Program-made: the position numbers and the translations under genes
Source: Octopus bimaculoides
Lineage: Eukaryota
Reading direction: 5' to 3'
Length of the DNA: 64,000 nucleotides
NCBI RefSeq assembly: GCF_001194135.2
Contig: NC_068984.1
Span: 105,149,639-105,213,638 of the forward strand
The notes under the pieces: model-generated
Told to the model about the DNA's origin: nothing
The model's database searches: none
Seen by the model: the letters and a program-made list of their open reading frames with translations, nothing else
Shown: piece after piece, positions 17,683 through 48,226 of the stretch
Numbering within the stretch: position 1 is the first letter of the stretch
Layout: each line of letters begins with the position of its first letter

Positions 17683-18056
17683 TTCAACCTGCTGTTTTGC
17701 TGGACTGGGTTCTAGTTTTGTATGGGACTGATAGACATCCCCAGCAAGTTCCCACCACTACTAGCACCAGCACGACTGCCGCACCAACTAGTAGTACCAC
17801 CACAGCTCCTCCTTCTAACTATCCTCGTTCGGTTGCTGACAAAGCCAATCCTCGTGTTCCAGCGACTCCTAACTTTCCAGAATATAATCATAATATATTT
17901 AGGACGAACCTAAAGTCACCATATGCACGTCGTAAACCTCCACTGCACAGGCACCACATGTGTATTTTTGAAACTCTTGCAAAACGGAACAACATATCGT
18001 CCATGCAGTATAGGCGAGCAGTAGGTAACTCTACCTCTGATGATGACAAGTCATAA
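17683..18056 (+). CDS. Proprotein convertase (subtilisin/kexin, furin/PC1-like) exon A: end of P domain plus Ser/Thr/Pro-rich C-terminal tail; probably an alternative last exon
   Basis: CTAAC branch motif at 17640-17644, long pyrimidine tract and TACAG acceptor (AG 17681-17682). Phase-1 translation (V)QPAVLLDWVLVLYGTDRHPQQVPTTTSTSTTAAPTSSTTTAPPS...YRRAVGNSTSDDDKS* with TAA at 18054-18056. DWVLVLYGT matches the P-domain terminal strand (cf. PC5 KEWSLVLYGT, furin KFTLVLYGT). The region is GC- and CpG-richer than its flanks. The specific paralogue cannot be assigned. Confidence 0.85.
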
Positions 18057-18704
18057 TTAATCACACATGTGGTTTATGGGACCATAAACAGCAATTGTTT
18101 AATATTTATCCAGTTAATGTGTACTGTTTGTCAAATGAGATAAAAATTTTTATTGTTGGAAATAGAAAAGAAAGAAATGAACGGAGGTTCTTATTGGTTA
18201 TAATTGCTGTCAGGGAAAAAAAAACTGTTTAGTAGTTGAGTAAATATTCTTTTTTTAATTGTTGACTTCCTGCCCATTAAACACAAAGACACATGCACTT
18301 ACACGCACACACACACACACACACTCTCTCTCTCTCTCTCTCTCTCTCTCTAAATAATTCTGAGCTAACCCCCATCTTTTTTTTTCACTCATTTAGAACA
18401 AAAATATGTTTTTGTTTATAACAATTTAAGTGCTTTACATTTTAACACATTCAAATAATGTTTTCTTTTTTTATTTGTATTTTTAAGAACCTTTTTATTT
18501 TGTCTAAGTTGAAAATTTATACATTTTTAATAAAATTCCGATGGAAATAACAAGCAGCTTTCTGCTGTTTCAGTGTACTTTTCTATTTACTTGTGTGTCA
18601 ACATGCACACACAGCACGCATACACATGCACACACACGNNNNNNNNNNNNNNNNNNNNNNNNNNNNNNNNNNNNNNNNNNNNNNNNNNNNNNNNNNNNNN
18701 NNNN

Positions 18705-18759
<55 letters not shown>

Positions 18760-20836
18760 GCAATTACACATTTTTGTGACACACCTCATTTTCTTCCCCT
18801 GTAATGCTGACTGACAATTATTTCTAAAATTTATTTTTAATAATTCATTTTACTCTAACAGTTCCTTTCTGTCAGCTCTTTTGGGCTTAATGTATTTGAA
18901 TGCTTTAGCCAAAGTAAAGAATTCCCTTCTTTTCTTTCTACCAACAGAATTACTCATCTTTTTATAAGAACGCATGTTTGAATTCTTGTATTACATACAA
19001 GAAAATAATTTTTGGAAGATGATGTGAATATATTGTTATTTTCTAACTATGGTAATAAGGTTTCATTACCAGAACTTTATAACAAATTTTATCTCCTTAT
19101 AACCTGGGAAGAGTTCAGCAAGTATTTCATAACAATCTGATACGCCTTTGCTTGTTATTTTTTTTGTTGAAGTCTTGCAAATTAAGAAGGATTGTACCAT
19201 ATTTTTATGTTATACTTGTATTTATCACTGACTAAATATAATGTCAAGTCTGTGAATATTGACAGTGTGATGTGCTATAAGCCACTTTGAGTTTTAGACT
19301 ACAGTTGGTTGTATTTTTTGAAGTGTTTCAAGCTGTGAATTTAGACAAAACATCAATCAACTACATTTCTTTCCAATTTACAGTGGCACTTCAATTTTCT
19401 CAACTCTTAGTACATTGCCAGCAAAAATATTGATGGAAATGAAATTCTGTTAGGTCTTGCTATTGCAAGAGAACTCAGTTATGTTCAGTGTGCTTTTTTT
19501 TTTTTGTAAAATTATTGAAAAAAAGTATGAAAGTGATATTAATCATCTTTTTGTTTGTAGGTCAAGTAGAAATTTCCATGACAGTGTTTCTGGTAAAGGC
19601 ATTGACACTAGTTGTTGAGCTAGGACAAACTCAATCAAATTGCTCCAAACATATTCAAAGGTGCTCTATATAGAATTTGTAGATCATACTCAAATGATCA
19701 TTCCATGTTATTTACTTTTATAACCAAAAAGTATTCATGGTGGAAAAGACAAAAAAAAAATAACAAAAAAAAAAGAAAGAAAAAGATAACTGCCTTAAGA
19801 ATGACTGTTGTTCTCTCCAGTGATGAATGTGGCTTCTTTATGCAAATGAATTACATACAATGGTTCATAGCGATCTTCTTTGTTTTGACTTCATTTTACC
19901 CTTTGCCTGTACATCAAACTGTGTATACATGTGTGTATGTTTGTAAGTGAATAAACATGGCTATTTACAAACATCCAAAATACTATTTTTAACCCATTTA
20001 GTGTTGTAGAAAAAATAGTTTGTTTCTACACTTTATGCATTGTTCTAAAATTGGTGACAGTTTCTTTTTTTAACAATTAATTGCTCCTTATTTGTGCATT
20101 GTATTTGTTTTTAAAGTTTGGATTAGAAAAGCATTTATAGTATGAGTAAACTGTTTTAATAGAAGTCTTTTTTTCTTTTTTATGATGAATCCCATTTCTT
20201 TCTATTTCAATAGGTATATTTTCAATAATTTTAAACCACTTAGTATTTAAGCTACATCACAATGAAAGTTCAGTTTTTTGTCCAGTTGCCATCATTAATT
20301 TTGTTTTAGATGTAGATGTTGACTAAAGACAGTTGTGTGAGTTAACATATACTAGGATTGAGGTGAACTCTATCAATTTAAATAGTTCTTCATTCATTTT
20401 ATTGATAAAGGTTAGGCCAGTGATCTTCATTAGTTTATGAGTTCTCTGGTAATGTAATCTGTTACCAATGGATCATAGGCACTAAGGAAAACATTGACTT
20501 TATGAAATCATATCTAGTGATGCATACTACTGGAAGTAACTGAACTCAGCACTGTCAGCGCTTGACACATTCCTAGATTTTACTGTAGCAATACTCTGTA
20601 CTCCTGTGTTGTACTTATTCACAGATAGATATTAGAAGTGTCATGGCTTTGAAGATATTTTAGTGCTCAGGAAACCACCAGACTTTCAGATGGTAAAATG
20701 GCACACTATCTACTTAATCATTTGTAACTCTCATTACTGTTTGTGTGTGTGCATGTATGTAGTATCTATAAACTATTATATAGAGTTTTTACCATCTACT
20801 TTCAAGAATTTTCACTAATTTGGATATGTTAATAAA
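18057..20836 (+). other. Putative 3' UTR of exon A with candidate poly(A) signals
   Basis: T-rich, transposon-poor sequence after the stop codon. AATAAA at 18529-18534, 19950-19955 and 20831-20836, the last followed by a T-rich tract. The true 3' end is unknown. Confidence 0.35.
18639..18704. other. Assembly gap
   Basis: Run of N inside a (CA)n tract. Confidence 1.
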
Positions 20837-21456
20837 GCAGATTTTCGTTTTTTAAAGATTTGAATTATATACTACTTTCCATTCATAATATTAATTATGA
20901 TTATTGGATATAATTTTAAGAATTAAGTTTCAATTAAAATTGCATCTTTCATCAAACTTAAACAGGATTACATCAAACATTTTAAAGACATTAGTCACTT
21001 TAATTCCCAAACTATTTTCAGAGTTATTTGCTACAAATAGCTAACCTGTTAAATTGTAAGAAATATATTAAATCTGATCTATTTTGAATAATTTAATGCC
21101 ATCAAAGTAATTCATTTTACTGAGTTCTGTGATAATAGTTGTGGATGTTGTTCAAAATGTTTCACTAAGTTGAAGTTTGTTTTTTATATATATATATTTA
21201 TGATATCTACTCAGGGTTTCTTTTTTTTTTTTTAGATTAATTTTCATTTTTTTTTTTTTTGCATTTTGTTGTTTACTTTGTAAAATTTCATAAATTTAGG
21301 ATATTTAGTTTCATAATCCATTACATAATGCTTCAAAATAAGATATTTTATCAATGTCCACAGTTAATGGTTTCATTCTTGAATAATTAGCTTTCTTTAC
21401 AAGAGACTTCTTTTGTTAATCAATACTTAAATGTATTGTGTTTTTAAAATGTTGGT

Positions 21457-21707
21457 NNNNNNNNNNNNNNNNNNNNNNNNNNNNNNNNNNNNNNNNNNNN
21501 NNNNNNNNNNNNNNNNNNNNNNNNNNNNNNNNNNNNNNNNNNNNNNNNNNNNNNNNNNNNNNNNNNNNNNNNNNNNNNNNNNNNNNNNNNNNNNNNNNNN
21601 NNNNNNNNNNNNNNNNNNNNNNNNNNNNNNNNNNNNNNNNNNNNNNNNNNNNNNNNNNNNNNNNNNNNNNNNNNNNNNNNNNNNNNNNNNNNNNNNNNNN
21701 NNNNNNN
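21457..21707. other. Assembly gap
   Basis: Run of N abutting the long palindrome. Confidence 1.
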
Positions 21708-21935
21708 GGTTAAAGTATATATTTAAATTATGTCAGAAAAATGTTAGAAAAATGTTAGAAAATCTTTTTGGTATATAAACATTGTATTTTGAGAAATAAC
21801 CGGTTTCGTGTTGTCTTTTCAAATTTAGACAACACGAAACCGGTTATTTCTCAAAATACAATGTTTATATACCAAAAAGATTTTCTAACATTTTTCTAAC
21901 ATTTTTCTGACATAATTTAAATATATACTTTAACC
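21708..21935. repeat. Perfect long inverted repeat (109-bp arms, 10-nt loop)
   Basis: 21708-21816 is the exact reverse complement of 21827-21935; loop TTTCAAATTT at 21817-21826. The left arm begins at the edge of an N-gap. Confidence 0.95.
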
Positions 21936-23369
21936 ATGTAACACAAGCCTTCTGTAGTTTTTTCACTCTTATTATCTTCTATATATATATATATAAAACA
22001 CTAAATATTTGTTTTAGTTAACTTGTGTTGTCTATTTTTATACATATCATTTTTGAATATTCAAATTTTAAAAATATGTCAGGGAAGAATTCTAAAAGGA
22101 ATCTGGTAATAGTCGGTAAATGAAATATATGTCTAAATTTTCAGAACTGAGTATATTGGATTAGTTCAAAACATCATTTATAACATATTCTCTCTTTCTC
22201 TCTCACACACATATATACACACACCAGGTTCATTTTAATTATAGAGTTAAATATACTTCATAATATATTTGATAAATTTTGAAACCTAAATTGTAAGCAA
22301 ATTTTCCTTAATATAACAACAGTTATTACTACTACTAATAATAATGTAGAAAATTATTTAAATATCTAGAATTTCATTTTCCTAAAGGGAATTTTTGTAA
22401 GAAGTGCTTAAGGAAGAAATGCTGTTAAATAGATCCAAAATGAAATTGTGTTATATTTATTGTAAATTTTTGCAATTCAGGTGATAATTTCACTATTTAC
22501 TTAGTTTTCTTGACTGAAGTGTTCCATAATAATCATACTTGTAATGTGTAATAGGTTTGTCTTTTCATACATTACCATAAAGAGTCGGGAACAAACCATT
22601 TATTTTGTTACTTTTTCAAATGATCATGTTTTGTGGGCCTAATTTCTATAACCGATATTTTGTTTCAAGTGAATTATGTCTCCTGTTGTTAACTATCTCT
22701 CCTCTTGTTAATTCTCTAGATGCCCTGTGGTTATTTTTTTTAATGTGATCATCTGTTTACTTCATTTTAATTGTTAGATTGTTTCTTTGTTTTCATCATC
22801 TGCATTAGAATTAGTGTTTGTAAGAAGAAAGAAGAGAATAAGTTTATAAATGTAGTTATGTGTGGTCATATTATAAGGATGAAATGTGATATGGCTAAAC
22901 TTGAAGTAAATCTGATTTTTAGTATATAGTATTTGATACAGATTTGGTAATGGATTCTTCTTTTTGGGCCTGATTTTGTCTTTGGTTTATTTTTCATTGC
23001 CATTTTGTCTTTATGTGCCACATTCTTAAAAATTATGAAGTCACAAAGCATAGAATGCCTGAAGAGATTGAAGGACATGCGAATGAGAATGTGCAGAGAG
23101 AAAAAAATACAAGGAGAAATAACAACAAGTAAAAAAATGAATAATACTAATTGGTAAACTAAATATGGGATAGATTGTCCAAATTCTAAATAAGTATGAA
23201 ACCTTGTGGTAAGAATATTCTTGATTTCATGTTTGCAGTTTCCTATGAATTAATAAAAAAAAATGCCTATTTTATAGATTAAAATTCAAATTCAAATATA
23301 CTGGATTCTGCATGTGCAACATTAAATTTGTGTTCTGTTTTGTTTGAGAGTGTGTGCATGTGACTATAC

Positions 23370-23528
23370 ATTGCATGTATGTATGCACACATGCAATATG
23401 TATGAAATGTATGCATGTACGTGGGGCATATATGTGTGTGTGTATGTATGTAGGTATATGTGTGTGTATGTATATGTGTATGTGTATGTATATATGTATG
23501 TATATGTGTGTGTGTGTGTGTGTGCGTG

Positions 23529-23562
<34 letters not shown>

Positions 23563-23600
23563 CATACACACATATATATATATGCATGTTTGTGTATATA
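23370..23600. repeat. Compound (TG)/(TA)/(TATG) microsatellite
   Basis: Direct inspection. Confidence 0.9.
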
Positions 23601-23629
23601 TGCCAATTTACCTTATATTGCAATTTACA

Positions 23630-24480
23630 CAGCTGTCTTTGTTTTTCTGTTGCCTTCTTCTGTTCATTTGTGCTGTACATTGCTTCAAACTGGAACAGGC
23701 CTTCTTCATAAAGACACACCAGTCTTTTCCCTCCTACACAGAAGATTCTAGATCTGACAGGGATATCAAAACTCCTGTGATTGCCTTTGATACAGTCCTT
23801 GTATCACAGTTGAGCATTCTTTTCGTTTGTTTTTCCATCAAATGCTCCCTGACATTTGCTGGTATGCCATGCAAAAGCTGTCTATCTGATTGATGTTGCC
23901 CATCCTGCATAACATATTAAGATCTTGATGCTGAGAAGGTCTACTCCATCTAAAGCTTCTAACCCTTTCGATCTAGTTGTGTTTCCTGTTCCATATCCTG
24001 ATCCTACAGCTGCATAGAAGTCTTGTAAGAATGTCTGCTTTGCCTATATTGATTTTTGTAGAAGACTGGGTGTTTGGCAGTTTCTCATTCAAGAGTATTA
24101 GCAACCCATTGAGGGATTGCAGTAATTATTTCCTTGTCAAGAGAAACAGTTGATGGTTCAGCTCAGTGTCATTCACAACAAATATCAAGAGAACCATTGA
24201 TGAATCTGGTGTTGACCAATGTGGGTCAGTGACATGGCAAGCTTCGAAGAATTTTTCAGCAGTCATTTGGAGATGTAATTCTCTTGTAACCACAGTCTTC
24301 AGCAAATGATGCATCTTAGACCAGTTTCTTAAGTGCCCATCCTGAAACCATTGACAGAGGTTGAATAAAGAGTCACCAGTTACTACCTTGTTTGTTCTTC
24401 AGTCAAGGTCACACAGATTCATGTAGAGCACCTGGTTAAAATAGAACTAAACACTGACACAGCTATTTTAGAAACCACAT
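23630..24480 (-). mobile_element. RTE-clade (BovB-like) LINE 3' fragment, degenerate
   Basis: Minus-strand fragments SDRQLLHG, YKDCIKGNHRSFDIP and LYEEGLFQFEAMYSTNEQKKATEKQRQL resemble the RTE-BovB C-terminus (RQLLYGEL...RYKD.LK..LK.FDI...FE..R). Confidence 0.6.
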
Positions 24481-25539
24481 AAGTGATAGTTTTTTAAGGT
24501 TATCTCTCCTTTTTTTTCTTTTTGGTGAGTTGAGACATGTAGGACTACATTATCTAATGATGTGACAAGTCCTTGATAAGACAGAGTTTCATTTCAGGGA
24601 AAGTAGGCTGCTATTTCTAGCTGGTCAAGTGGCCAGATAGAGACTCATTTACACAAGTGGTTAAATGGTATAGTGGTGAGACTGGAACAAACTAAAGCAT
24701 TATAGATAGTACCAATGATCCTAACAAATCTGGATTGACTAAGCTTTATAGCAACGTTATGTTCCAAGTTAATACAGTCTTGACTATATCATGTTAATGA
24801 TGGTCTTATTGAAATCTAAGCATTTCCTAGTACAATTTTCTTGAGTTTGTCTCGCCATTTAAACTTTTACACCCTAACCAAAAACCATACTAAATGTGTA
24901 ACAATATGTTTTGGGGATGAGAAAGATTCATGCAAGAGTAATGTTTGGATTTTGAAAAAAGGAAAGAAAAATAATGAGAACACTTATTGCCGAACATTCT
25001 GAATGAATATTTTGAGAAATCAGCATTTGTATCTTGTTCCTGTCTCTGCCATTACAAGAACATGACAGTCTTAATGTCTAATTCCACCTTGCTCTAAACT
25101 AGGTATTCCATATAATGTAATTCATTGCAATAAACAGTGGAAGCACTATCAGATTGGTAAATGTTTCTTTGATTTGCAATGTCATATTTAGACTCTACTC
25201 TAGGAAAAGTTAAGATAGAAGAGCAAGAAGGTATATATCTCTTTTCTGCCTAAATGCTATTGAAAACCAGCGATACACATCAGATTATTCTTTGTGAATG
25301 CTGTTTAGATTACTGTATAGTGTATTAGATCTCTCTCCTTGGAGAACTACATGAAGATAATTATGTAAAAACCTCTTTGCCAGCAGCAGTTAGCTAGGTC
25401 TTCTCTTTTGCATTCCAATGTGTCCTTTTTACTTCACAAGTATTAAGTATTACTGAACCAGCTTTGTTATGCTTGGTTTCCTTCTATCATACTGCCAGAC
25501 AATCCACCTGATACATTAATCAGATCATATGTCAATGAG

Positions 25540-26180
25540 GGTTTCAGAGTCATTCACTGTGCTCACCATTGCTAGAACCATTAGCCGTGCAAAACAAAGT
25601 ATAATGCATGAAAGATGGGAGCCACTCTTGAATATACTGAAAATGGCAAGGTGAGTCACTCAGTAACATTATGATTTGCAAATAGATGCATTTTTGTGGT
25701 CTTACACCTTTTGGGGTTTTACAAGAAATATGTTCGATAAATGTTTTTATTTTAGCATTGTATTATTGGTTGGCTCTGCAGGAATGGTCTGTGCTCATGA
25801 CCTTCACACACTCCTGAGACTGGTGAGATTAAATCCATTAGTATTCCACTTAAACAGTTGCAAGCTAAAGGCCACAGGAAAAAAACCTGTGCAAAAAGCA
25901 AACTTAAGAAGTTTCAGTGTTCCAGGAAAGAAAGTACTTGATGCAATAATTATTACAGGACTTTGGAGTGGATGCAGTATGGAGGACAAAATGAGGGGAG
26001 ACAAGTTGGAATTGCTTGAATGGTTATAACATGAAAACCAACCAGTTCTAAGAAACAGAAGTCATTAGTGTACCAGGGAAAAAAACAGAGAAGACACAGT
26101 ATGGTCAAGTGTATTTGTGAGCAATCAATCAGGTTGGGTTTTGTTTGGATAAAACTGAAATTTACAGGCATATACCATAC
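25540..26180 (+). mobile_element. Possible piggyBac transposase C-terminal remnant
   Basis: Fragments TKYNA*KMGA (cf. DYN..MGGVD), KKYVR*MFLF (cf. KWYKKLFF) and TEKTQYGQVYL*AINQVGFCLDK (cf. the Cys-rich tail KET.Y.C..C...GLCL..CF) occur in the expected order. Heavily decayed; no TIRs identified. Confidence 0.4.
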
Positions 26181-26479
26181 ATGACATATATTAATCATCA
26201 TTTTAATGTCCAGTTTTCTATACTTGCATGGGTTGGACAGACTTTATTGAGGCAGATTTTCTATGGCTGGATGCCTTTCTTGTTGCCAACCCTCACCAGT
26301 TTCCAAGCAAGGTAATATTTTCCCATAGCCAGATATGTTTTTTGCAGAATATTGGAAATGTATGACACTGTGTCACAGTGACACCCATTTACAACTATCA
26401 CATAATGTCAAGGCTAAGAGACACCAACATACACGCTCATATGTACATGCACACACACACACACACACACACATTTAGA

Positions 26480-26635
26480 GAGAGCTTCTTTCAATTTCCA
26501 TCTACAAAATCCACTCACAAGGCTTTGTTGGTCAGGAGCTATAATAGAAGACGCTTAAGGTGTTATATCGTAAGATTGAGCCCAAAGCCATGTGGTTGGG
26601 AAGCATACTTCTTAATCACACAATCACACCTTCAT
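26480..26635 (-). mobile_element. Long SINE family 5' half, antisense
   Basis: CTTCTTTCAATTTCCATCTACAAAATCCACTCACAAGGCTTTG...CATGTGGTTGGGAAGCATACTTCTT is the reverse complement of the SINE head. Confidence 0.7.
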
Positions 26636-26638
26636 TTA

Positions 26639-26688
<50 letters not shown>

Positions 26689-27139
26689 CAGCCAGTGCTC
26701 CAGCATGGCCACAGTCAAATGACTGAAACGAGTAAAATAATAAAAGAATATATATGGTATATACGGAGGTAATGCTAAATAGTTAGTAGTGATCTTTCTA
26801 TGTATAAGACAAACTGAAATACAAACACATCTTTGATGGTATTAAACAGCAAACCTTTTATGAAATTATTCTCTCAGTAGGTTGAGTAATGTTAAAAAAA
26901 AGTTTCAGTATGCAATTGTAATACTGATCAAGTGCTAATAGCCTAAAATTTGCCATACATAATCAAATAATCCACAATACTTGTAACAGAAAATTATGGA
27001 ACACTTTTATAACTTTGTGTAATGAAACAAAGAAATGTGTGTGTGTCAGATTGTCTTCAATTAACATCTGCTCTACATATTGATATAAGCTGGATTGGAT
27101 CTGACAAATCACAAGGCTGCATGAAGCTCCAATGTATAT

Positions 27140-28440
27140 TTTAGCATGATTTCTGTGGCTGGATGCACTTCCTAATAGCAACCACTTTACAGTGTGTACT
27201 AGGTGTTTTTCTTCATGTTACCATCATTAGTGAGCTTATCTCAGCGTGCAAGACTGATGGGTCTAGAGGAGCCCCTATAACTGAAGGATAATAGGAGAGT
27301 GTATGATGATTTTAGGCAAAGTGATGAAAGATAAGACATAAGGAGAGGAACAGTTAGTTGTGAGAGGGCGATAGCAGAGAGAGTAATAGAGTATAATGAA
27401 TATACAGAGTAATAGAGTTGGGGAGGGTGTGTGGAAGAAGCAAGAGAAAGAAAGAAATGACTCAGTAGTTAGTGATAAATGGAGGAAAAGAGTTGTAGGG
27501 GTAGACTGTAAAGTGAAGGGGATCCAGGGCTATTCCACATATAGACAAGTGTGGGCAGTTGATGTGAGGGGAATGAAACATGAAAAATGAGTGTGGTGAG
27601 GATCCAGAGAAAGTTATTGATTAAAAGAGAAGGTGAGGGGGTTGAAAGGTAGGCCAAAGGAAGATAAGAGAATATTGAGGTAGCAGAGAGGTTGTGGCAG
27701 AGGACAATGAAAGAAAGAGGAGAGATAGAGAGAGGGTGTGATAGATGGCAATGAGTAAGTGAGCATCCCAGGTGGTGAGGTAAGAGATATGAATGATAGG
27801 GTAATGCTTGAAGTGAGTCAGGAGATAGATTGAAGAACAGATAGTTATGAGGATGGACCAATTCAGTCACTCGTACACATGATGGGGATGGTATGTGAAA
27901 CAGCCATACATAGTCTATGCACTTCAAAGATAGTAGAGAGATAAGAGATGAAGAGGTTTGAGTGATAGACAAGATGAGGTGTGCATCAAATATAAACTTC
28001 ACAGAATACAAATGTGTATATATTACACACACACAAACACTTGCATACAGAGATCACAGCCTCTGTAATTATCATCTTTTCAATGCACTAGTCATATCTC
28101 CTGCAGTCACATCACCAATCAATACACTCCTTTGTCATTTCCTCTGTGAGGTAGCATCTTCAAGTCAGCCTTCAACACTTCATCTCACTTTTCCCTTGGT
28201 CTCCCACTTCTTCAGGTTCCACTAACTTGAAGTGTTCAGCACTTTTGTATGCAGCAGTCATCCTCTATATGCATCACATGCACATACTGATGCAACTAAT
28301 GCAGCCTTCTCTCTTACACACTACATCTGATCCTCTTATATCCAGCTTTTCTCTCAGTTCATTCGTACTCTGTCTTTCATACTCACTAACATTAGATATC
28401 CATTGGAGAATGCTTGCTTCTTCACTTTCTCTCTGACTAA
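27140..28440 (-). mobile_element. 5'-truncated RTE LINE: ORF end, CT-rich 3' region and conserved tail
   Basis: Minus-strand SILQWISNVSEYERQSTNELREKLDIRG...LTEEMT at 28100-28440, then a strand-asymmetric purine block (27240-27990 on +), then the tail motif GGCTGGATGC.CTTCC..A..CAACC at 27140-27240. Confidence 0.65.
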
Positions 28441-30260: not shown

Positions 30261-31410
30261 ATGTATAATGGAATCAGATGTAGTTTACAAGAATGGAGAC
30301 CTTGTGATTATGGACATACAATACAAATAACAGTACTAATGGAAGAGAAAGTCTGTGGAAGTGGAAGACTTCGAAAGACATGGGTTGAAATGGTGAAAAC
30401 TGATCTTAAGATACTGATGTTCATGAGGGAGTTGTTCAGTGGCTGCAACACTGTATGCAGGAGCACTCTCTCTCTCAAGCTGGGCTGGAAGAGTGTTAAC
30501 AAGAGGTGCATTGATAGCTGGGTTACTTTTGCTGTTCCTCCCCTGTTTCCTTTTCACTATCTTCTCTTCTCTCCTCTCCTCTAAATCTCTGCCTGTGATA
30601 TTTTCACTACATTGTTATCTCACACTCCTCACCACCTGAGACACTTCCTCTGCTGTGACATCCTGATCTTCCCCACTTCTTCTGTGGTACTGATACTTTC
30701 AGCCACTCCCTTTCTGCTCTTGCTGTACTCACTCACTGCTCTTCCACTCTCCTCCTCATTTTCTATGAGCATCTTCTTTGCACAACACTTACAATTCTCC
30801 ACATGTTATCTTTCCATATTTGGCCCACCCCTATGATCTGCACATTATTTGCTTCTTTGGTGACTCCCTTCAGATCCTTGTTACATCCCTTTATCTCTTT
30901 CTTTCATGTCCCTTTTTGCTAACAGCATTCCTTTCATACTCACCTTTGTAATGTAGGTTGACTGGAAACCCTTACACAACAAAACTTATTACTCTGTCCT
31001 TCTTTCTCATTAACCACTAACACATATCCCTTCCCATATATCCTTTCTCTCCCAGTATCCTTTCTCTCCCAATAGTATCAGCTTTGTAATACTCCCCACT
31101 ATCACCCTCTCACAACTATCAATATGTTCCTGTTTTCATATTTTACTTTCTCATCCTTGAATCATCGTGTCTTCTCGCTACTATTCTCCTTTAGATAGAG
31201 GACCCTTAGTCTTACATGTTCAAATGAGACCTTGCTACTGCTAGTACCATAGCAACAAACCACCCTGTAATAACCATACTCTGTAAGGTAGTTGACATTA
31301 GGAAGGACATACATAGACACTAAGGCAAAGCAGACAATGGAGAGTCCTCTGACTACTAGGATCATGTCCAACAGTTCAACCCAAGCCACATGGTAACATG
31401 TGAAAGATGA
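30261..31410 (+). mobile_element. 5'-truncated RTE LINE: ORF end, CT-rich 3' region and tail
   Basis: MEEKVCGSGRLRKTWVEMVKTDLKIL matches the RTE motif G...RGRPRKTW.E.VK.DL. It is followed by a CT-rich block (30520-31160) and a tail ending near 31410. Confidence 0.65.
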
Positions 31411-37765: not shown

Positions 37766-37890
37766 GCAGCATTGATGAATGGTCAAGAAGTTTACTTTGC
37801 AGTCAGTGTCTTGGGTTTAACCCAACCCTTGTGGGTGAAACTGGATAGGTGGAAATTGTGTAGAAACTCATTGCTTGTATTGTTCTTGTA
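37765..37890 (+). mobile_element. Long SINE family fragment
   Basis: Degenerate head (GGTCAAGAAGTTTACTTTGCAGTCAGTGTCTTGGGTTTAACCC) and GGATAGGTGGAAATTG segment. Confidence 0.45.
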
Positions 37891-38406
37891 AAAGCCAACA
37901 TTATCACAAACCTCATCACATGGAGTCTGCTTTAGGACTATAACAAAGGTATGCACAACACACACAGAGTCTCACACACATTGAGGTTTGATCTTTTAGC
38001 TCAAATTAAAGTATGTTACACTTAATAAATCAGCTTCATAATTATAGTGTCAGTGTTATCAATTAAAGATATTTATATCATATTTGTATTTCCTGTAAAA
38101 TTTCTGTTTGCTGGGGTTCTGATGGGGCAAGATACTTTTCAAACACATGTGCTTCCGGTAACTATCAGAGCTTTTACAAGGACAATAAATATAATATTAA
38201 TAAAGAAATATTCTAACAAGAAAGCATATCTTCTTTTACTTATATTCAAGTATATCATAATTAACAAAACAATTGAAACAATTTTCACCTTGTAGTAGTT
38301 CCAAAGTTTTTAACATTCTCAACAGCGTACTCCATTTTATCATTCAAACCATAATATAGGCTTCCTATCTATTCTATAAATGTATTTTTAATTTTTAAAA
38401 CTGAAC

Positions 38407-38407
<1 letters not shown>

Positions 38408-38445
<38 letters not shown>
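38408..38445. repeat. (TTA)n trinucleotide microsatellite
   Basis: Direct inspection. Confidence 0.95.
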
Positions 38446-38447
<2 letters not shown>

Positions 38448-39115
38448 ATGAAATTCACATTTTTATCTTATAAATGCGTATGTTTATTTTTTGAAATTTC
38501 ATTATAAAGTCTCTTGACAATGTCATATTTTTTTTTACATATTATTGTCAATGACCTTTATGTCTGTCCTTCCATTATTGGATTGCAAGGTTGGTGGTAG
38601 GCAGCAAAGGTATCCAAAAATCAAGTTATCAAAACGTTCCAATAATGTGCAATAAAATAGTGTGTGTGTGAGTGTATTATATATAGAATAGATCATGTGC
38701 TCAGACTCTAAAGATTGCTTGGAGACACAAGGCATGTTATAAAAACCTGCCTAGACACACGTTTCCAATGCAAGAAACTTTTAGTAGCTCATATCTTTAT
38801 ACTGTGTACATTAAATATCTATCTATATATACATACACACCATCAATTTCATCTAATTTCTTTGTGTCTAAGCTAAATATTCTCATTAGATAAATTCCAA
38901 CATTAGATTGCTACTTCTGTTTATGGCTGGCAGGGTGAAGTAGTTATTGGCTTCAAACAAAAACAAAAAAATTTTTTTAAATATTCTTAGATAAAAATAT
39001 ATTTTGATTGAGTTTGTACTTTCTGTCCAAATGTTTACATTGCAATAATGTCAGGAAAAGTTCTGACAACCAAGAATGTAACCAGTATGATTTGTTTATT
39101 ATTATCATTATTATT

Positions 39116-39330
39116 CAGAATCATTAGGGCATTGGATAAAATGCTCGGTGGCATTTCTTTCAGCACTTTACATTCTAAGTTCAAATCCCACCAAGGTCAA
39201 CTTTGCCTTTCATCCTTTTGGGGGTCGATAAAATAAAGTACCAGTCAAGTATTGGGATCAATGTAATTGACCAGCCCCAACCCTACTAAAATTGCTGGCC
39301 TTGTGCCAAAATCTGTAATTGTAATTATTA
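39116..39330 (+). mobile_element. Short tRNA-derived SINE family
   Basis: B-box AGTTCAAATCCC, then GGTCAACTTTGCCTTTCATCC...GGGGTCGATAAAATAAAGTACCAG and ATTGCTGGCCTTGTGCCAAAA. Collinear with 58270-58490. Confidence 0.8.
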
Positions 39331-40230
39331 GTTTAAAAGTTATGGATTTTCATTTGAGTCTTCCTTCAAGTTTAGTTGACTTTTTGATGATACAAAAACT
39401 TCAATATTTGTATGCAGTGATATCTAATTTAGTGAATTTTTTATATACTGAATTTAACAAAAACAAGTAACTGGTGCTTATTTAAAATATTCTTGAAATG
39501 CAATACCACTTTCACATAACTGAAATTTCAGCAACATTCAAAGATCATTTATTGATCAAGACAAATAAGTTATTGAAACTTTAAATCATTTGTTTAGTTT
39601 AAGGCAGTTCAAAAGATTTTTTAACATTTCAACCCAACAATGATAGAAATATCACTTAAAATTATTGTAATTGGAATAACTCACATTATATTAATCAACT
39701 CCATTCTTTAACTTAATTTTTGGAGTATTTGAAATCAAACATGTAGTTTGATGATCATTCTCTTTACATTGTAATTGTACAAGTATCAGTGATTGTATTT
39801 CTAATGACAGTCTTCTAACATCTTATGAAACATTAATTATACAACTATTATTCATGTCACCAGTCATAGATTTTATTTTGAAAACAAATTACTGTTGTTG
39901 CAATGTTTATTTCTTCAGAATTAAATTTTGGTCTTAGAATTTTTATTATATTATACAAACTATGTTTGATCATTTTATTCTTCAGGTATAAACTAATTTT
40001 GTACTTCAACTTGACTGTATATCAATTATACTGAATTTAGAAATTATCATCAGTTGTTGAAACTATTATTATGTAGTTATCTCATCTGATTTTCCTTCCA
40101 AAATAAAAATGAAAAAAAAATCTGATAGAACTGATTTTATTGAAAGTGCCTCACCATGGGTTGGATTTAAATGGTCTACCTCTTCAAAATAGTTAATCTT
40201 TTTTTTATATGTAATATATATATATAAATA

Positions 40231-40240
40231 NNNNNNNNNN
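40231..40240. other. Assembly gap
   Basis: Run of N within (TA)n. Confidence 1.
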
Positions 40241-43200
40241 ATATATATATATATTGTTGGCTTTGTTAAACATTGAAGACCAAAGAATCTTAAACTATTA
40301 TTAATATAGTAAAGTTTGAAATCAATTTAATGTGAAATGTGATGCTAATCTTTGCATATTGCCAAGTGTTCAATAAAAAGAAGAAAAAAAAGCTGCTATT
40401 CTTTCTCTATCAATTAGGGTTGGTTTGGCTCTTGTAGTGTTAACATGAGCTTTTACACATGATTTCTAAACTAACCATTTTGTTTGTATTGTTAACTTGG
40501 TGAAAATAACAGCAGGATGTATTTAAATTTTGGACCAAAATAGGTTTTAAAATTGCTTATTCCTGTTTGTACATATATATGATGTCATGAACAAGGCAAT
40601 AAAAAAATAGATTACTGTACAAATTTCTACAGTCCTTGTATGTTCTGAAACTATTTTTGTCAAACTGCTGTTACCTAGTTTACAAATATTCATAGAATTT
40701 GTGATTATTACTGCCAGCTGTATTTTACAATTTTCAAATCTATAAAACTGAAAATTCTCTTAGGAATTTTATATGTTTTTAATGTTTGTTGATTAGTCCA
40801 TCTAAACAATACCAATACGGATATCAAAAACAAAAAACAATTAAAAAAACAGTTGTTAATTTGTTAATGTTGGTGAGGATCTAATTATAATTAACCATTT
40901 AGTTTATGATGGTTCTGATCCTCTTACCACTGAAACTGATGAAAATATTTACATAAAGTGAACTGCTTTTTTGAGGTTGAAAGAAGAGAAGAAAATCTGA
41001 ACAATATTGACTCTTGAGTGCACATACTTTTTTTTTTTTTTTTGATAAGTATGTGTACTCTTTCTCTTTCTCTCTCCCTCCCTCTATCTCAAAGGTAGCA
41101 ATGTTACTATGGATAGTATGTTTTAGTTCAATCTGTGTTGTATACAATTGTTCATAATTGAATCATTGTACGCCTGCTTCCCATTGTGCCTTGTATGGGC
41201 CATCTGAAGTATGCTCAAGGAAAATAAACAAGGTGTCATCTTTCTCTTTACTTCTCATTTATTTTTCATGCTTGCATAATCTTTAACTTCTTTTTAAAAA
41301 TGATCCACTATTTTTTTCTTTGTCAATGTTTGTTGTTTCTCTTTACTTTCCCTTTATTCTTTGTATGCCTAATGATATTGAGCTGTAATATCTTAGCTTC
41401 AATACGTATTGGAATTTTAATGTTTTAACAAATTTTATGCTGAAACATTAAGATCCTTATAATTTTGGGTTTGTTGAAAAATGATAACACTCGGAGTGCC
41501 TTCAATAAACTATAAAATAATGGTAATTTGCTCTTTAAATTAATTAGTCAACTTCTGTAATAAATCATCTGAGTAATTTCATGTATTTCCTTCTGTAACA
41601 AAATATAAATGGGAGATAAAGCAATGTTTCATTGTTTTTATATATCTAATTAGTAAATAAGTACTGGGTTGATTAGTTGAAGTGGAATTCTTCAAGGTGG
41701 TCCCGCAGCATGGCCACAGTTTAATGACTGAAACAAGTAAAAGATAAAAGATAATAGTATAATTATCATAATAATACATACTAATTATAAGTAAGACATA
41801 ATTATCCACCATGCTATCCCAGAAATTTAAGATAAGCTGTTTATTAAATAATTTAGTATGTCTGCATATTAAGATATTTTGTACTTATATAGATAGTTAT
41901 CTATTGGATAAACAAAAAATGTTGTTTAGTTAACAAAATTATAAGTAGTCAAATAAATTTCATTGTGCATTAAGAAAGATGGTTGTTATTATTTGTGTTT
42001 CTGTTCCTGAGTATGATGAAAATCTATTTAAATAATTATACAACTGTAACCAACTTCTTCAATTTTGAAAGAAGAACTTCAGTGGTACAGTTTGAATTTA
42101 ATTGTTCATTGTTAATTTTCAATTATGCTTCTTTTTGCTTGATTAGATATGACAGAGTTACTGTTGAGCCAAGTATAATAATCTGCAGTGATTCTACATG
42201 TCATTAATTTACTGCATCTCACTGATCCTTGATTGAATAGTGCAAAGACTTGTAATTACCTTAGCTTAAGAATAAAACTGTTACAAAATTAAGTTTCCTT
42301 TCATTTATGTTTATCACTAGAATTAATGATGTTAATAAGGATCATTGTGTATTGATTGATTGATTGATTGATTGGTTATAAATATATAAAATGAAATAAA
42401 TGCAAGTTTCAAAGATAGATTAAAGTCATTGCCCAGCACAAGATTCAAATTTGCAAAGCAAAATTTGCTAGGAATGGCATCAGTTTATTATTGATAAAAT
42501 TACCATTAGTACCTTTTCTACCCGGGAGGACAATTAAAATACGTAACATTAAGTTTGCTGACCAGAGACACAACAAAGTACCTACTGTGTGAGATATGAA
42601 CAAATACTGCCCTGTGACTTCGTTGTCAAATACATTATTGAATTTGTCTTTACAAAGATTTCTCTGGGAAGTATAACTTACCATATGAAAGAACATTTTC
42701 AATTAATGAAAGAGCATTTTCATTGAATGTAAAACTTAAGTAGAAGAAATAAGCATCAACTTTTAATACAGATTGATATTAATTATTGTAGGTTTTGGCA
42801 TCCATTTAACTTTCTAATAAGATCAGTTTGATAGTATAAATTGAAGTAACAACAGAATTGAAAATGCATAAAAGGTTGGCACATATTTAACAACCAAACT
42901 ATATTTAGTTGTGTTAACAGATAAGATACAGATAAAGTTTTACTTAGTTAAGATTCATAAACTTAATAGGAGTTATTCATTTACGTATCTATTTTATGTC
43001 TATACCCATTTTATGTTATTAAACAACCATAATAACTTTAGATATGGTTTTAGTGTCATTTTCACTTAAATATGGTTCCTATGACAATTTCAGAGACTGA
43101 ACGGTTAAGAGCGAAATATTTTACCAAAGCCAGCACACAACTTTGTACAGAATTTGATTTATGTGCCCTTTGGTAAATAGATAATAATTTGGCCACTGTT

Positions 43201-46069
43201 AACTCATTGGCTTGTAGTTTTCATATAGCTCATTAAGTTTGTAGTAAATTTAAATTGCTTATGTTTATTTCTTTCTTCATTTACTGTGTTTGTATGTTAT
43301 ATAGTTTGATTAGTTTTCTCCCTGAACATCTATTTCTTTAGAAGAGCTTTGAGAGCATAGATCTTAAAAATGCACCTGTAAAAGCCATGCCTTGGTTTAA
43401 ATTTTGTGGATTAAACCAGGTGTCTAGCAAAAACAAAAATTGATCTGATTCTTGTTGAATTGTATGGACTCCAGTTCTCTATGGAGAAAAATAACCAACT
43501 ACTATACCTTGACAGACTGATGTTGGGCACCAGGATTATGTGTGTGTTGAAAATCAATAGCTGCCAGACTTTCACCTAAATTATGAGTTTTATCATCCCT
43601 ATTGTGTTTGTATATGAAGTTATTGGATGCTTGCAACATTCAGTAAAAGTCATCTGCATTCAATATGATAGCTTATAAACTAGAATTCTGATACCTAAAT
43701 AATCTATTCCTGGAGAATTGACGTCTTCTGTATGATAGTTTCATTTAGTTTTATAGAAAGACAAAATGTAAATAATTTGTAAACAATATATAGGAACAGT
43801 ATTAAGAAGTGACATTACACTCCACAAATCCTGTACCGGTTGAAAGTTGTTCCAGAAGATAGACAAATTTAAAAAATTACATTTTCAAAAGGTCTTTCAA
43901 AAAGGTAAATAAGATGGCATAAAGATCAGAACCTCACAAAATTTTGATCACTGAAGAATTAATTAAATAATAAATGGCAGAGAATAAATTGTGTGAAAAT
44001 GAAAATCTCATGCTCCATATGTCACATACACAATTTAATTGAAACTGGGGTTTAGAAAATTTGGTAGGCACACACACATGGTATCCAGCAGTAGAAACCA
44101 AACCAAAACTGAGACAGTAGAGTAAGATGTGCTCTACCAGCATGCAAAGCAGATTTAAAATGATGATGATGATGAGATATATATATATCATTAAGAAGCT
44201 AATCAACATTCTCAGCATATATTTGAATAAAATTCATTTTACTCAATTTGACACACTTCTGTCCTTTGTGAGAGCAGCATAGACAAAACATTGAAATACT
44301 AAGTAACTTTGCTATGGTTTTTGTGTGTGTACATGTGGAAATAAAGGATTTAAAAATGATCAACGAATTAAGCAGTGGAGATATAAAGTATAGAAAGACA
44401 GCTGATGTAAAGATAAGAGTGTGCATAATTTTTTCTGCTTGAATATTTTACTCTTTTTTTAAAAAATATGGATACTTATTCAACTTGATCTGGACCCAAA
44501 AGATTTGTCCTGAGTTTAGGAAACTTAACTGAAGTAACCATTTCCTAATATAACTGATGAAGAAGAATTCCAGTAGGAAGGAAATTGTCTCCAAATCAAA
44601 TGTATCATTCATAAAAACATTTCTAAAAGATAAACTCAGGTCAAAAACATGGGAATCTGTTCCCAATCTTCAATTATGGCTTTAATTGCTTATATATTCT
44701 ACTTATTTAGAACTTTTAACAGTTTAAACGTTGATTTATTAGTTAAATGCCACATACAAGAATATTAATTTTCAGCCAACTTTCAACAAGCTTTCCGAAG
44801 GAGGTTAACAAAATCATTACCAAGCAAACTCATTACCAAAGTTTTACATATGTTTTTCATTTAAATGATGATTTTCTTCCAATTCTTTAGATTTTTATTT
44901 TATACTAGTTATATCGTATCTTTATCTCTCTTTCCAGCTCCACACCATTTATTCCCACCTACTCTGTTATAATTTGGAGTAGGCATGTATCTTCTCTACA
45001 ACAACAGTCTTGTGCCTATCCTTCCTGTTTTTAATCTCTCGACCTCAGGCATAAAGCCTTCTCCTTCTCTATTCATTTAGTCTTACAAGCTACATGGCAA
45101 CCTCACTAATGCTGATGCCATGAAAAAAGTACTCTCTATAAAGAGGCTGGTATTAGGAAGGGCATCTAGCTGCAGAAACCATGCCAAAACTGAGACATTG
45201 CAGTAAGATGTCTTACTTTGACTCATTGGATACTGTTGAACTGTTCTCAGATGTAAAATGAAGATGGTGACTAGTTACATTGCATAAAGTGTGCCTTTCT
45301 CTAGAGTAAACATGTCTTTATAAATACTATTATAAAGTAACAATAGTACAAGTTTCACAATCATTTTCTTGAAAACACAAACATTCAAAGCACATTTTTT
45401 TATAGCCATCCAAGTATGGTGCAATGCTTTCTTGATTTTTCCTTGAATAACATTTACATAGGACTAATTTTATTCTCTTACCAATAAGTGTAGTACATAG
45501 TTATTAACATTTGCATACATGAAAATATAGTTGTACCTATCAAATACCTTAAAATTAAATGGATATATTTTTCAGTTTAACATATATGTTAACCTAATTT
45601 TAAAATTAAGGTTTTTCAGAGGGAGGAATATTTATTTCTAGTAGTGTATCAGGTATCAGAAACATCTTGATATTGATAGAGTGAGCTATTGTAGTTTTAC
45701 ATTCCTGTCTTAGAATATGAAATGTAAGATTTCTAGGCAAGAACCACAATACTATTTGTATTTATAATGTAAGCAAAGTGAACTGGTTACAACCAAGAAT
45801 TTAAATGAAGCAAACTTTCATCACAGTTAACTTACCTCTGCACTACAGTGTTTATCTATAAAATTAAACTTGGATCTAATGGAAGCTTGATGCTTGTTCT
45901 CTGTAATTTGACAATGAGGATTCAGTCATTCAATCAACTGAATTAGCTCCTCCTAAATTAATAAATGACTGAGTATTCTACATACACCTTTAACATAATT
46001 TTCAGGCAGAATCAACATGACACCATGTATTGTTGTACTGGTGTACTTTTAAATTACTGATACAATCCA

Positions 46070-46240
46070 TTCAACAGGTGGCTTTACAGTTTCCATCAAC
46101 CCAATTTTGTTCACAAGGTATAAGTCAACCCAATCCTATAAAAAAATGACATTTTCCCAAGATACTACTATATAATGGAATCAAGCCTGTGACCACATTT
46201 GTGAAGTAAAACTTTTAACCATTCATCCACACTCCAACTA
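46070..46240 (-). mobile_element. Long SINE family fragment, antisense
   Basis: CAGTTTCCATCAACCCAATTTTGTTCACAAGG...AAACTTTTAACCATTCATCCAC, reverse of the SINE head. Confidence 0.5.
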
Positions 46241-48008
46241 TGAGAGCTTAGTATTGGAATGTAATAAACAGCCATACAGTGTCTTTGTTGCTTAAAACAG
46301 TAAGTTTTGCCTTCCCATGGCACTTTTTACAACTATGTGGACAGGATTGACATTGCCCAGAGTACAGCATAACAGCCATTACAGGATAGGATTCAGATAA
46401 CCCTTTGGCATCTAGACGACTGTTCTAATAGCTTGGTTTGTATCATAACTTTATAGTTGCTATGCCTTAGCATGAAGGTAAGAATATCCTTTAAAAAAAG
46501 GCCTTGAATCATTTGTTTCTGCAGCTGGCTGTAGTTACATAACATACTTGAAGATAAAAAATATATATTCAGTGTATTCTCCAGGGCTTTCTTATTAACT
46601 AGAGACTTGACACGGAACATTAGTTTGTAAATGAAGCATTTGTTAAACTGCTAAGGCATATAAGGTTCAAATAAATTCTTTATTTAATTTTGCCCAAATT
46701 ACCCACCAGTCAAATTATTTTTAATATTAATAGTTTTAAAGTTTTAACATAAGTTTAAAATTTAGTCAAGTAATTCCTCAAAACTTAATCAAGTAATAAG
46801 TGGAAATTCTTATATCCTACTTAACCTGGATATATTGTTAGAGTGCCATGTTACTGCATTATTCACCTTGAGAGATTCTCTCATATAGGCATAAAGTGCT
46901 TAGAGGTACAAACATATTGTTAGCAGACAATAATGTGGCGGAACATGTTAGCAGATATGGGTGGTGGAACTGCTAGATCACGTGAATTCAGCATATCTGC
47001 TTTTCTTCAGTTGCTGGCATCCACTCACTACATGCCAGCCAAAAAGAAAGGAATATTTTTAATATATTGAAAAACAAGAGAAATAACTTGTTTATAAAAG
47101 CCACATGCCTTCTACACTTGCAAAATTTCTAATTAAATCAATTTTAAATGTTTGCTCTTTCTGCAAAAGGAACTTAAATACTGCTGTGTTTAAATATGTT
47201 GGATCTATCAGCATTATTTGTTACATTTCATACAGATTGTTGCATTTTCAAGTATAGTATAACAAATCATATCTTATTTTCATTTATAAAGAATTAGAAG
47301 TAAAGATTAAAAATTACAGCTCTTATACCTATTTGCGTTTTTAGCCTTCTAGTTCAGTATGTTTATTTTTAAAGACAGTTTTGTTTTAAGTTACTTCAGC
47401 AAGAGTCAAGGTATCCTTTACCAACAATGAAATAGTTAAATAAAATTGATAGCAATATACTTTGAAATAATTAAATATAAGTTATGTACCTTTCTTAAGA
47501 ATACATCTTAATATTCTTCAGCTAGCCAGCTTATGACTTCCTAACTCTTACTTAGACCAATGGTTTTTAACCTCCTTTTCTTTTTTTTTTTTTTTTTTTT
47601 TTTTTGTAGAGCTCCTTTTTTAAGTTGTTATGCCTAACACCTACCTAAATGGCAAGTCAGGTATCATGACAAATCTAATTTAACATGGGGGTCAATTTAT
47701 AAATTTTACTCAAAAAATGGATTGTTGAGAATCTCTGCCTTAGACCAATACTTCATATTCCCATAAATGTTAGCTATAATTTTTCCTAATTAGCATACTA
47801 ATTAAATACATCAAAGCTGTTTAATTGTTGTCTGTCTTTGATTTATAAACAGAAATATGATTGTCTTACTAATTATGTTTTCACAAATTGTTACAAACTG
47901 AACTTCTAAGAGCATAAATGTAATTCTCTGGTTCTCGCATGATCTTTATAATTCTATCCACTATAAATTATTTGTATTTAACTGTAAACTTTTCTTACTC
48001 TTTTACAG

Positions 48009-48226
48009 CAGAATTACGAGAATGGGTTTTGGTCATTCTTGGCACAAAGGAACATCCTCGACATCGCAATATTACTCCAGAAACATCACGCATGAATCAG
48101 CAATTTCAGTCTGTATATACTTGTGCTGGTGAATCTCCTAGCAGTAGGGTCTGCATAGGTTTGTGGATATTCACTTATATTATAGTTTGTACTAGATTTT
48201 CCACATTTTACATTCCACTTCTCTGA
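48009..48226 (+). CDS. Proprotein convertase exon B: second copy of the P-domain terminal strand plus a short tail with a hydrophobic C-terminus; probably an alternative last exon
   Basis: Pyrimidine tract and TTTTACAG acceptor (AG 48007-48008). Phase-1 translation (A)ELREWVLVILGTKEHPRHRNITPETSRMNQQFQSVYTCAGESPSSRVCIGLWIFTYIIVCTRFSTFYIPLL* with TGA at 48224-48226. It aligns with PACE4 GKLKEWSLILYGTAEHP. The 3' end is uncertain because phase-1 donor-like sites exist at 48129 (G|GTGAAT) and 48159 (AG|GTTTGT). Confidence 0.8.

Follow-up and report, generated by a model that had tools for sequence, protein, structure and literature searches.

Alternative C-terminal exons that each encode the last strand of the P domain in a probable furin-type convertase gene of Octopus bimaculoides

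The locus and its two closing exons

The stretch of Octopus bimaculoides DNA considered here (64,000 nucleotides (nt); NCBI RefSeq assembly GCF_001194135.2, contig NC_068984.1, positions 105,149,639 to 105,213,638 of the forward strand), which we call the window and number from its first letter, very probably contains the 3' part of a single proprotein convertase gene of the furin type, lying on the plus strand, with its prodomain exons, its catalytic exons and most of its P-domain exons further upstream, and able to end in any of at least three tails. Two exons in the window, here named A and B, each encode their own version of the same structural element, the last beta-strand of the P domain, and in octopus messenger RNA (mRNA) one or the other of them is joined to the same upstream exon. 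The RNA evidence consists of short-read de Bruijn contigs from public RNA runs of the same organism (X numbers); loci and sequences of other species used for comparison carry L and P numbers, respectively.

Exon A is preceded by the acceptor ...tttctgtttacag/TT at 17682/17683 (a solidus marks a splice junction), and the following features belong to it.

17660..17682, plus strand: acceptor and polypyrimidine tract of exon A (sequence cttgtccctctttctgtttacag; RNA contigs of 7 runs begin at exactly 17683)
17683..18056, plus strand: exon A, the coding part of an alternative last exon (translation and RNA contigs)
17706..17729, plus strand: copy A of the last P-domain beta-strand, WVLVLYGT (completion of Pfam P_proprotein; A-type exon of L001 against furin structures)
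17955..18011, plus strand: conserved A-tail motif HMCIFETLAKRNNISSMQY, with a dibasic site and an N-x-S sequon (also in 12 A-type exons of other species)
18057..18638, plus strand: 3' untranslated region (UTR) of isoform A (certain to 18330; an X1 contig reaches the gap at 18639)

The exon starts in phase 1, its first two bases completing a split codon, and its translation leads from (x)QPAVLLDWVLVLYGTDRHPQQVPTTTST (with more of the start, QPAVLLDWVLVLYGTDRHPQQVPTTTSTSTT) to HMCIFETLAKRNNISSMQYRRAVGNSTSDDDKS, ending at a TAA stop at 18054–18056. Its 374 coding nt close the P domain with the last-strand motif DWVLVLYGTDRHP and add a 107-residue tail, in which a Thr/Ser/Pro-rich stretch is followed by the conserved motif (HMCIFETLAKRNNMS) and then the stop; the product has no membrane span or hydrophobic segment. 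An unbranched RNA contig extends from 17683 to 18324 or 18330 in X1, X5, X9, X12, X13, X25 and X26. Polyadenylation (poly(A)) signals are present in the 3' UTR at 18276 (ATTAAA) and 18529 (AATAAA), the actual 3' end being masked by a high-copy repeat (18301–18352) and the gap. This repeat, a short CA-rich sequence that breaks the transcript contigs, reaches an RNA contig depth of 21,000–158,000, compared with 9–41 for exon A, and is crossed by hundreds of unrelated contigs. When the A tails of octopus and seven relatives were compared with Pfam at E values up to 10, no family was matched, the PC1/3-type tail profile (Proho_convert) included.

Exon B follows the acceptor ...cttttacag/CA at 48008/48009, and its features are these.

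47990..48008, plus strand: acceptor and polypyrimidine tract of exon B (sequence ttttcttactcttttacag; contigs begin at exactly 48009 in 8 runs)
48009..48158, plus strand: exon B, a 150-nt internal exon, phase 1 at both ends (a 180-nt contig and longer contigs)
48023..48046, plus strand: copy B of the last P-domain beta-strand, WVLVILGT (completion of Pfam P_proprotein; B-type exon of L001 against furin structures)
48159..48164, plus strand: optional 5' splice site, ATAG/GTTTGT (contigs leaving the genome at 48158; same place in L001, L002 and L004)
48159..48226, plus strand: read-through extension of exon B, giving isoform B-short (contigs crossing 48158 in X5, X7, X9, X12 and X25)
48227..49700, plus strand: 3' UTR of isoform B-short (an X5 contig ends at 48788; an X9 contig continues to at least 49700)

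Exon B, which is in the same phase as exon A, is translated as (x)ELREWVLVILGTKEHPRHRNITPE... (in longer form ELREWVLVILGTKEHPRHRNITPETSRMNQQFQSVYTCAGESPSSRVCI...). It closes the P domain with the motif EWVLVILGTKEHP and begins a linker toward a cysteine-rich (Cys-rich) region (..YTCAGESPSSRVCI). Its acceptor is a tandem CAG-CAG (48006–48011), of which all contigs in the 8 runs take the first AG; use of the second would join the upstream T to AA, making a TAA stop.

Two fates of exon B can be seen in RNA. In X1, X2, X3, X5 and X12 the donor at 48158/48159 is used, in contigs of up to 3995 nt, and the loose end beyond 48158 is AATGTCGTGTGGGGTTCTATAAGTTGGGTA in the same runs, reading ..VCI-E-CRVGFYKLG, which from its sequence we take to be the start of a furin-type Cys-rich repeat. 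These ten residues of the next exon (ECRVGFYKLG) are all of the Cys-rich region seen in the octopus itself. The 180-nt contig, made up of 30 upstream nt and positions 48009–48158, was found in X5 and X12. Alternatively the donor is ignored, and translation continues into GLWIFTYIIVCTRFSTFYIPLL, a hydrophobic tail of 22 residues (mean Kyte-Doolittle value 1.44) that ends at a TGA stop at 48224–48226. Downstream of this stop there are AATAAA signals at 48761, 48865, 49181 and 49958 (the last of them beyond the UTR as noted above), and the X5 read-through contig ends 22 nt after the first. Since the intron upstream of 48009 has zero RNA depth in the same runs, this read-through is to be regarded as a genuine mRNA form rather than as pre-mRNA.

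One upstream donor, one gene

Every RNA contig that starts at 17683 or 48009 carries, immediately upstream, the same 30 nt (TGCTAGAAATTGAGAATGGAGCAAGTGCAT), which are not found in the 64-kilobase (kb) window. This 30-mer precedes 17683 in X1, X5, X9, X12, X13, X25 and X26, and 48009 in X1, X2, X3, X5, X7, X9, X12 and X25. It reads ..LEIENGASA plus a T, so that joining to exon A makes the split codon TTT (Phe) and joining to exon B makes it TCA (Ser). It agrees at 26 of its 30 positions, the differences all being synonymous, with the 3' terminus of the P-domain exon in L005 (..GTWMLEIENGASA/gtaagt, preceded further upstream as in ..FAKGTWMLEIENGASA/gtaagt). Because the 30-mer is the same on both classes of contig, a single donor, that of the penultimate P-domain exon, feeds both acceptors. 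Within 10 kb of the L005 exon, the closest relative of the upstream exon, there is neither an A nor a B exon, which fits large introns. The 30-mer downstream of the exon B donor is likewise not found in the window. As neither flanking 30-mer is there, the preceding exon must lie over 17.7 kb upstream of exon A and the following one over 15.8 kb downstream of exon B, or else in an assembly gap at 54794–55138.

The remainder of the window was searched for other parts of a convertase. Regular expressions for near-invariant catalytic and P-domain motifs gave no match in any of the six frames, and tblastn with human furin gave nothing better than E = 0.45, the P exons of control loci being matched at E values of 1e-26 to 1e-28 (the P-domain part of the furin query agrees with the PDB alignments). 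With the close relatives P0135, P0136 and P0137 as queries, the only matches in the window were exons A and B. The lack of any other convertase exon in the window argues against two tandem genes. No contig in 11 runs joins exon A to exon B. In P0137, which has the same exon layout as the octopus gene, Pfam recognises S8_pro-domain, Peptidase_S8 and P_proprotein.

The initial annotation of this DNA, made from the letters alone, had placed two plus-strand, phase-1 exons behind good acceptors at 17683 and 48009, had seen no catalytic motif or further convertase exon between them, and had predicted that one upstream phase-1 exon would be spliced to both, all of which is borne out by the sequence, the searches and the contigs described above. 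Its statement that both exons diverge and run to a stop is true of exon A and of the read-through form of exon B, but needs to be amended, because exon B is also an internal exon with a used donor; and its single gene with swappable C-termini, which the shared donor upholds, has three tails and not two.

A strand encoded twice

Translated in all six frames, the window contains the motif W[VS]L[VL]..GT..HP at two places; none of 200 shuffles contains it. The core common to exons A and B is 14 residues long, with 9 residues and 25 of 42 nt identical, and this low level of identity indicates copies that parted long ago rather than a duplicate made in assembly. Apart from the strand W-x-L-x-x-x-G-T-x-x-(H/N)-P, the two exons have nothing in common, and the linker before the W is of 7 residues in A and 4 in B, in octopus as in L001 and L009.

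That this core is the last strand of a furin-type P domain, as had been suggested initially, is supported in two ways. The cephalopod-like P exon of L005 alone covers positions 1–71 of the 86 positions of Pfam P_proprotein (PF01483), and the addition of either octopus exon extends the match to 1–85 of 86, with 90.3 bits for exon A and 90.5 bits for exon B; thus each isoform has its own version of the strand, again as first proposed. Further, the upstream P exon of L001, joined to its own A- or B-type closing exon, aligns to furin ..GEWVLEIENTSEA/NNYGTLTKFTLVLYGT in the structures 1p8j and 4omc (chain positions 451–467), the junction falling between the last two strands (..ENTSEA/NNYGTLTKFTLVLYGT). 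The A-type exon aligns without gaps to furin FTLVLYGT, and the B-type exon has a loop that is shorter by 3 residues. The P exon is 59–60% identical to human furin.

The P domain is needed for the folding and activity of kexin-type convertases. The split point leaves about 15 residues of the P-domain fold still to come, and because the intron cuts the domain ahead of its last strand, any alternative 3' exon used at this intron must bring that strand with it. It is because each of the alternative 3' exons has to supply the strand that the strand is encoded twice.

Use of the three forms in different samples

The use of the three forms was gauged from the k-mer depth of contigs, a crude measure, with these results.

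X1: exon A 37; exon B 23, all spliced on
X5: exon A 21; exon B 333 (read-through 221, spliced 24)
X12: exon A 41; exon B 214 (read-through 44, spliced 137)
X9: exon A 8.8; exon B 13.7, read-through only
X25: exon A 7.7; exon B 39, read-through only

The gene therefore gives rise to at least three C-termini, in proportions that differ strongly between samples.

Relatives and conservation

The order P exon, A-type exon, B-type exon, in the same phase, was found in L001/L002, L004, L014, L011, L012 and L009/L010, the P exon of these relatives ending with ..ENGA(H/S)S in phase 1. The P exons of L011, L012 and L009/L010 share only about 60% identity with the others and among themselves, which is approximately the distance to human furin. 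The arrangement is thus common to at least six well-diverged invertebrate lineages, octopus among them, in keeping with the great age at first ascribed to it.

The A-type exons of other species start, as in octopus, with a Thr/Ser-rich stretch, and the motif H(M/L/V)C(I/V/T)(F/Y)ET(L/M)(A/S)K..N(M/I)S..(Q/H)(Y/F) is found in 12 further sequences from other species, making 13 with octopus. In the A-type tails of P0002–P0012, L006 and L007 conservation stops sharply, in most species, after ..L(S/T)xGK, with the frame remaining open; this could be a true C-terminus or a further splice site. The octopus A tail ends differently (..GNSTSDDDKS), on an unbranched RNA contig.

In L001/L002, L004 and L014 the B-type exon reads (S)ELK(Q/E)WSLLMMGTS..P...TCSGITS.GVCI, its acceptor is in the same phase as in octopus, and a donor g/gtctgt follows ..VCI at the octopus position (from DNA in L001, L002 and L004, from translation in L014). 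Read-through of the B-type exon leads to a short hydrophobic end of 13–26 residues, with a mean hydropathy of 0.85–2.35, in all seven of the lineages examined. Two arthropod-like sequences, P0140 and P0145, end in ...AELLKWELVLYGT, followed by about 45 residues and after these by a hydrophobic C-terminus, and so have the layout of octopus B-short; their strand starts with 'AEL.xW', as in exon B. The architecture of the long form can be seen in P0135, in which a B-type strand is followed by Cys-rich repeats (Furin-like_2, 20.5 bits, which is below the Pfam cut-off), a membrane span (FFVWVIILCTSLILLFGVVFIVL) and a cytosolic tail.

Some relatives differ. P0137, a full-length gene model from another species, has one strand of A type (MRDWVLVLYGT) and one of B type (IKDWRLTMYGT) in series at residues ~560–630. 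This is most likely a gene-prediction artefact brought about by the alternative-exon layout, though it is possible that the species really uses part of exon A as a cassette. In L008 (10001–16738) there is an A-type exon at 11463 and a Cys-rich exon at ~13140, with transmembrane and cytosolic exons downstream. A phase-1 GTAAAA donor is situated in L008 directly after ..YGTDSHP (11499), and a single exon could there serve both routes. Unlike the octopus locus, L013, which belongs to a different paralogue, comprises two tandem genes: near-identical last-strand/Cys-rich exons at 183 and 11038, 10.8 kb apart, have a pro-domain exon between them. All the convertase genes sampled have an intron near the last-strand point; the nematode and moth matches are of the PC2 type and have no intron at the last-strand site itself. 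A word-indexed homologue search returned nothing for exon B, and for exon A and the P exon it returned exon-sized open reading frames (ORFs) only.

A model for the choice of tail

The following scheme accounts for the three mRNA forms. The penultimate P-domain exon, ending with ...W(M)LEIENGASA in phase 1, has its donor joined to one of two acceptors. If the acceptor before 17683 is chosen, exon A adds the strand DWVLVLYGT, the Thr/Ser/Pro-rich stretch, the motif HMCIFETLAKRNNISSMQY and a stop, and the transcript is then polyadenylated. If that before 48009 is chosen, exon B supplies the strand EWVLVILGT, and a second decision follows. When the donor at 48158 is ignored, the stop at 48226 and polyadenylation from ~48788 on would result in a short enzyme with the 22-residue hydrophobic end; when it is used, ...VCI-ECRVGFYKLG... 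would lead into the Cys-rich region and, to judge by homology, to a transmembrane helix and a cytosolic tail. On this scheme a choice between alternative last exons (A or B) at the phase-1 intron is followed by a choice at the exon B donor between splicing and polyadenylation (long or short).

All three proteins would be expected to fold and to be active, and the content of the tails suggests that they send the isoforms to different compartments. Thus, isoform A may be soluble and luminal, with a glycosylated stalk ahead of the conserved module at its C-terminus; B-short may be attached to membranes by its hydrophobic end, a candidate anchor, or by a glycosylphosphatidylinositol (GPI) anchor, for which that end is a candidate signal; and B-long, by homology, would be a type I membrane protein resembling furin. 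It may also be that the two versions of the strand tune the enzyme (its stability, or its dependence on calcium or pH), and do not merely accompany its address.

It is possible, and we offer it tentatively, that the twice-encoded strand is an old and widely conserved design of invertebrate furin genes, in which the phase-1 intron is the hub of a three-way tail switch between a soluble form with the conserved module HMCIFETLAK(R/K)xN(M/I)S, which is not known to have been described before, a form with a hydrophobic or GPI-like anchor, and a Cys-rich transmembrane form.

Alternative explanations

Several points weigh against the picture of a single gene with three functional tails. Only 30 nt of the upstream exon have been seen in octopus, and the contigs are not full-length cDNAs, the linkage of each tail to a complete catalytic domain being deduced from relatives. 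Contig depth is an unreliable guide to expression. A gap of 251 N within the interval (21457–21707) is not bridged by contigs of four runs, making the 30.3 kb between exons A and B an estimate, and it is formally possible that a small exon is hidden there. No B-type exon was found in L008 between the A-type exon and the Cys-rich exons, and the arrangement is thus not universal. The isoforms are known here as RNA. Finally, the similarity between the two strands may largely reflect what the fold demands, which leaves local duplication as their common origin unproven.

This last point is central to the strongest of the alternatives, in which the present mechanism is the same and its origin different: exon A might have been captured from a former neighbouring paralogue, by tandem gene duplication and loss of the intervening exons, or have arisen independently, the resemblance to exon B being due to the needs of the fold only. 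The complete dissimilarity of exons A and B outside the strand, and their different linkers, are what would be expected from such a history; the intron near this point in all the convertase genes sampled would make last exons interchangeable modules; and tandem convertase genes do exist. On the other hand, the GT-x-x-HP extension beyond the strand, present in both A and B in several lineages, is a hint of shared ancestry, and no paralogue with an A-type tail as its sole tail turned up, though no systematic search was made. On balance we consider a different origin the less likely, though by no means remote, and suppose tentatively that the two strand segments arose by duplication.

Given that the evidence is from RNA, isoform A or the read-through form of B might be noise of splicing or polyadenylation, with no function of its own, and indeed read-through of a weak donor is a common by-product, and T-rich introns often have hydrophobic translations. 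However, the A-tail motif is conserved in at least 13 sequences, and in X1 the depth of exon A exceeds that of exon B. Moreover, in X5, X7, X9 and X25 most or all of exon B is read through; this form has canonical poly(A) signals, and its tail is short and hydrophobic in every lineage examined, with P0140 and P0145 ending alike. We think it improbable that either form is noise.

Still less probable is a pair of tandem convertase genes, with exon A ending an upstream gene and the catalytic exons belonging to exon B located between 18 and 48 kb or hidden in gaps. The example of L013, and the four assembly gaps within the interval between exons A and B, lend this idea what plausibility it has, but neither the motif search nor tblastn, with furin and with close relatives, brought to light a catalytic, prodomain or P-domain exon in the window; transcripts of exon A and of exon B carry the same upstream 30-mer, itself from outside the window; three of the four gaps in the interval are microsatellite gaps; and in other species a single P exon is followed by A and then by B within 10 kb. 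The notion that either copy might be a dead duplicate or pseudo-exon, or an artefact of assembly, which has nothing in its favour beyond the presence of gaps in the interval, can be set aside almost entirely: RNA from many runs shows both exons transcribed and joined precisely at the acceptors predicted for them, their DNA identity is only 60%, and distant relatives keep both with open frames.

A single gene with alternative closing exons thus remains our preferred explanation. The initial annotation had itself named what would tell against such a gene (catalytic exons between the two copies, junctions to only one of them, or a copy neither transcribed nor conserved), and when these were looked for none was found.

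Gaps and repeats in the window

No gap falls within exon A or exon B, and three of the gaps (18639, 31914 and 40231) are inside CA/TA microsatellites that extend beyond them in both directions. The 251-N gap has on its right a high-copy repeat (21717–22000; depth up to ~76,000 in X17), which is probably the reason for the break in the assembly. The fifth gap of the window (54794–55138, 345 N) adjoins a TA/CA microsatellite and could in principle hide the exon that follows exon B.

ORF fragments at 2164–2352 and 30261–30584, both on the plus strand (..LQRVSEVTLLNRMQSLEVRESL.. and ..GRLRKTWVEMVKTDLK..), look by eye like the C-terminal end of the reverse transcriptase of a long interspersed nuclear element, and are probably decayed retrotransposon copies in introns. 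A short element, recognisable by ..CGWEA(S/Y)FL.. and ..CPRCHAVGLN.. in its translation, is repeated at 50112–50609 and 51781–52155 on the minus strand and at 26378–26722 and 12316–12633 on the plus strand; it is likely to be an abundant genome repeat resembling short interspersed nuclear elements. Scans of the window with Rfam and for transfer RNAs found nothing.

Comparison with known systems, and significance

Alternative C-termini are already well known among convertases, and it is the structural strand encoded twice that is the instructive detail of this locus. The nearest parallel may be Drosophila Fur1 (Roebroek et al. 1993 and De Bie et al. 1995, cited in PMC2121096 and PMC3014772), which reportedly yields Dfurin1, Dfurin1-CRR and Dfurin1-X by alternative splicing and polyadenylation. 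The tails are reportedly a short form with a hydrophobic anchor, a Cys-rich form with a membrane span, and a third, unique one. There too one furin-like gene with one catalytic core has three C-termini, and octopus B-short and B-long would resemble Dfurin1 and Dfurin1-CRR. The HMCIFETLAK tail, in contrast, has been seen only in the mollusc-like cluster. A hydrophobic C-terminal cluster is also a feature of PACE4E.

Mammalian PC5-A/PC5-B and PACE4 are comparable to the octopus gene in being C-terminal variants made from one gene. As a passage in PMC2121096 has it, PC5-A, sorted to the regulated pathway, and PC5-B, which is membrane-bound, are such variants of a single gene and reach different compartments; likewise, the isoforms of bli-4 differ in their 3' exons (PMC10538796). 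Unlike those of the octopus gene, however, the PC5 isoforms diverge inside or after the Cys-rich region, behind a complete P domain, and no structural element is encoded twice.

In another respect the locus invites comparison with the tandem-duplicated, mutually exclusive exons of ion channels and tropomyosin, where one or other of two related exons, alike in phase, is used to supply the same structural element. Exons A and B do have the same phase, and they are used exclusively of one another, but they are not a classical pair of this kind: A is terminal, with a stop and poly(A) signals of its own, and B is internal; A has 374 nt of coding sequence and B has 150 nt; and only ~14 codons are homologous.

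Furin-family convertases govern the place and time of activation of hormones, growth factors, receptors and matrix proteins, and their C-terminal tails set the compartment in which this happens. At this locus, RNA evidence at the level of splice junctions shows three differently tailed enzymes to be specified by one invertebrate gene. There is also a lesson for annotation: where, as here, a convertase gene is followed by another '...W.L.L.GT' exon, that exon is neither a pseudogene nor a second gene, and such exons are not to be chained serially. The conserved A-tail motif is a candidate for a new sorting or regulatory module, and for cephalopod neurobiology the gene offers a defined set of isoforms, whose sample-dependent use can be related to the processing of peptides in different tissues.

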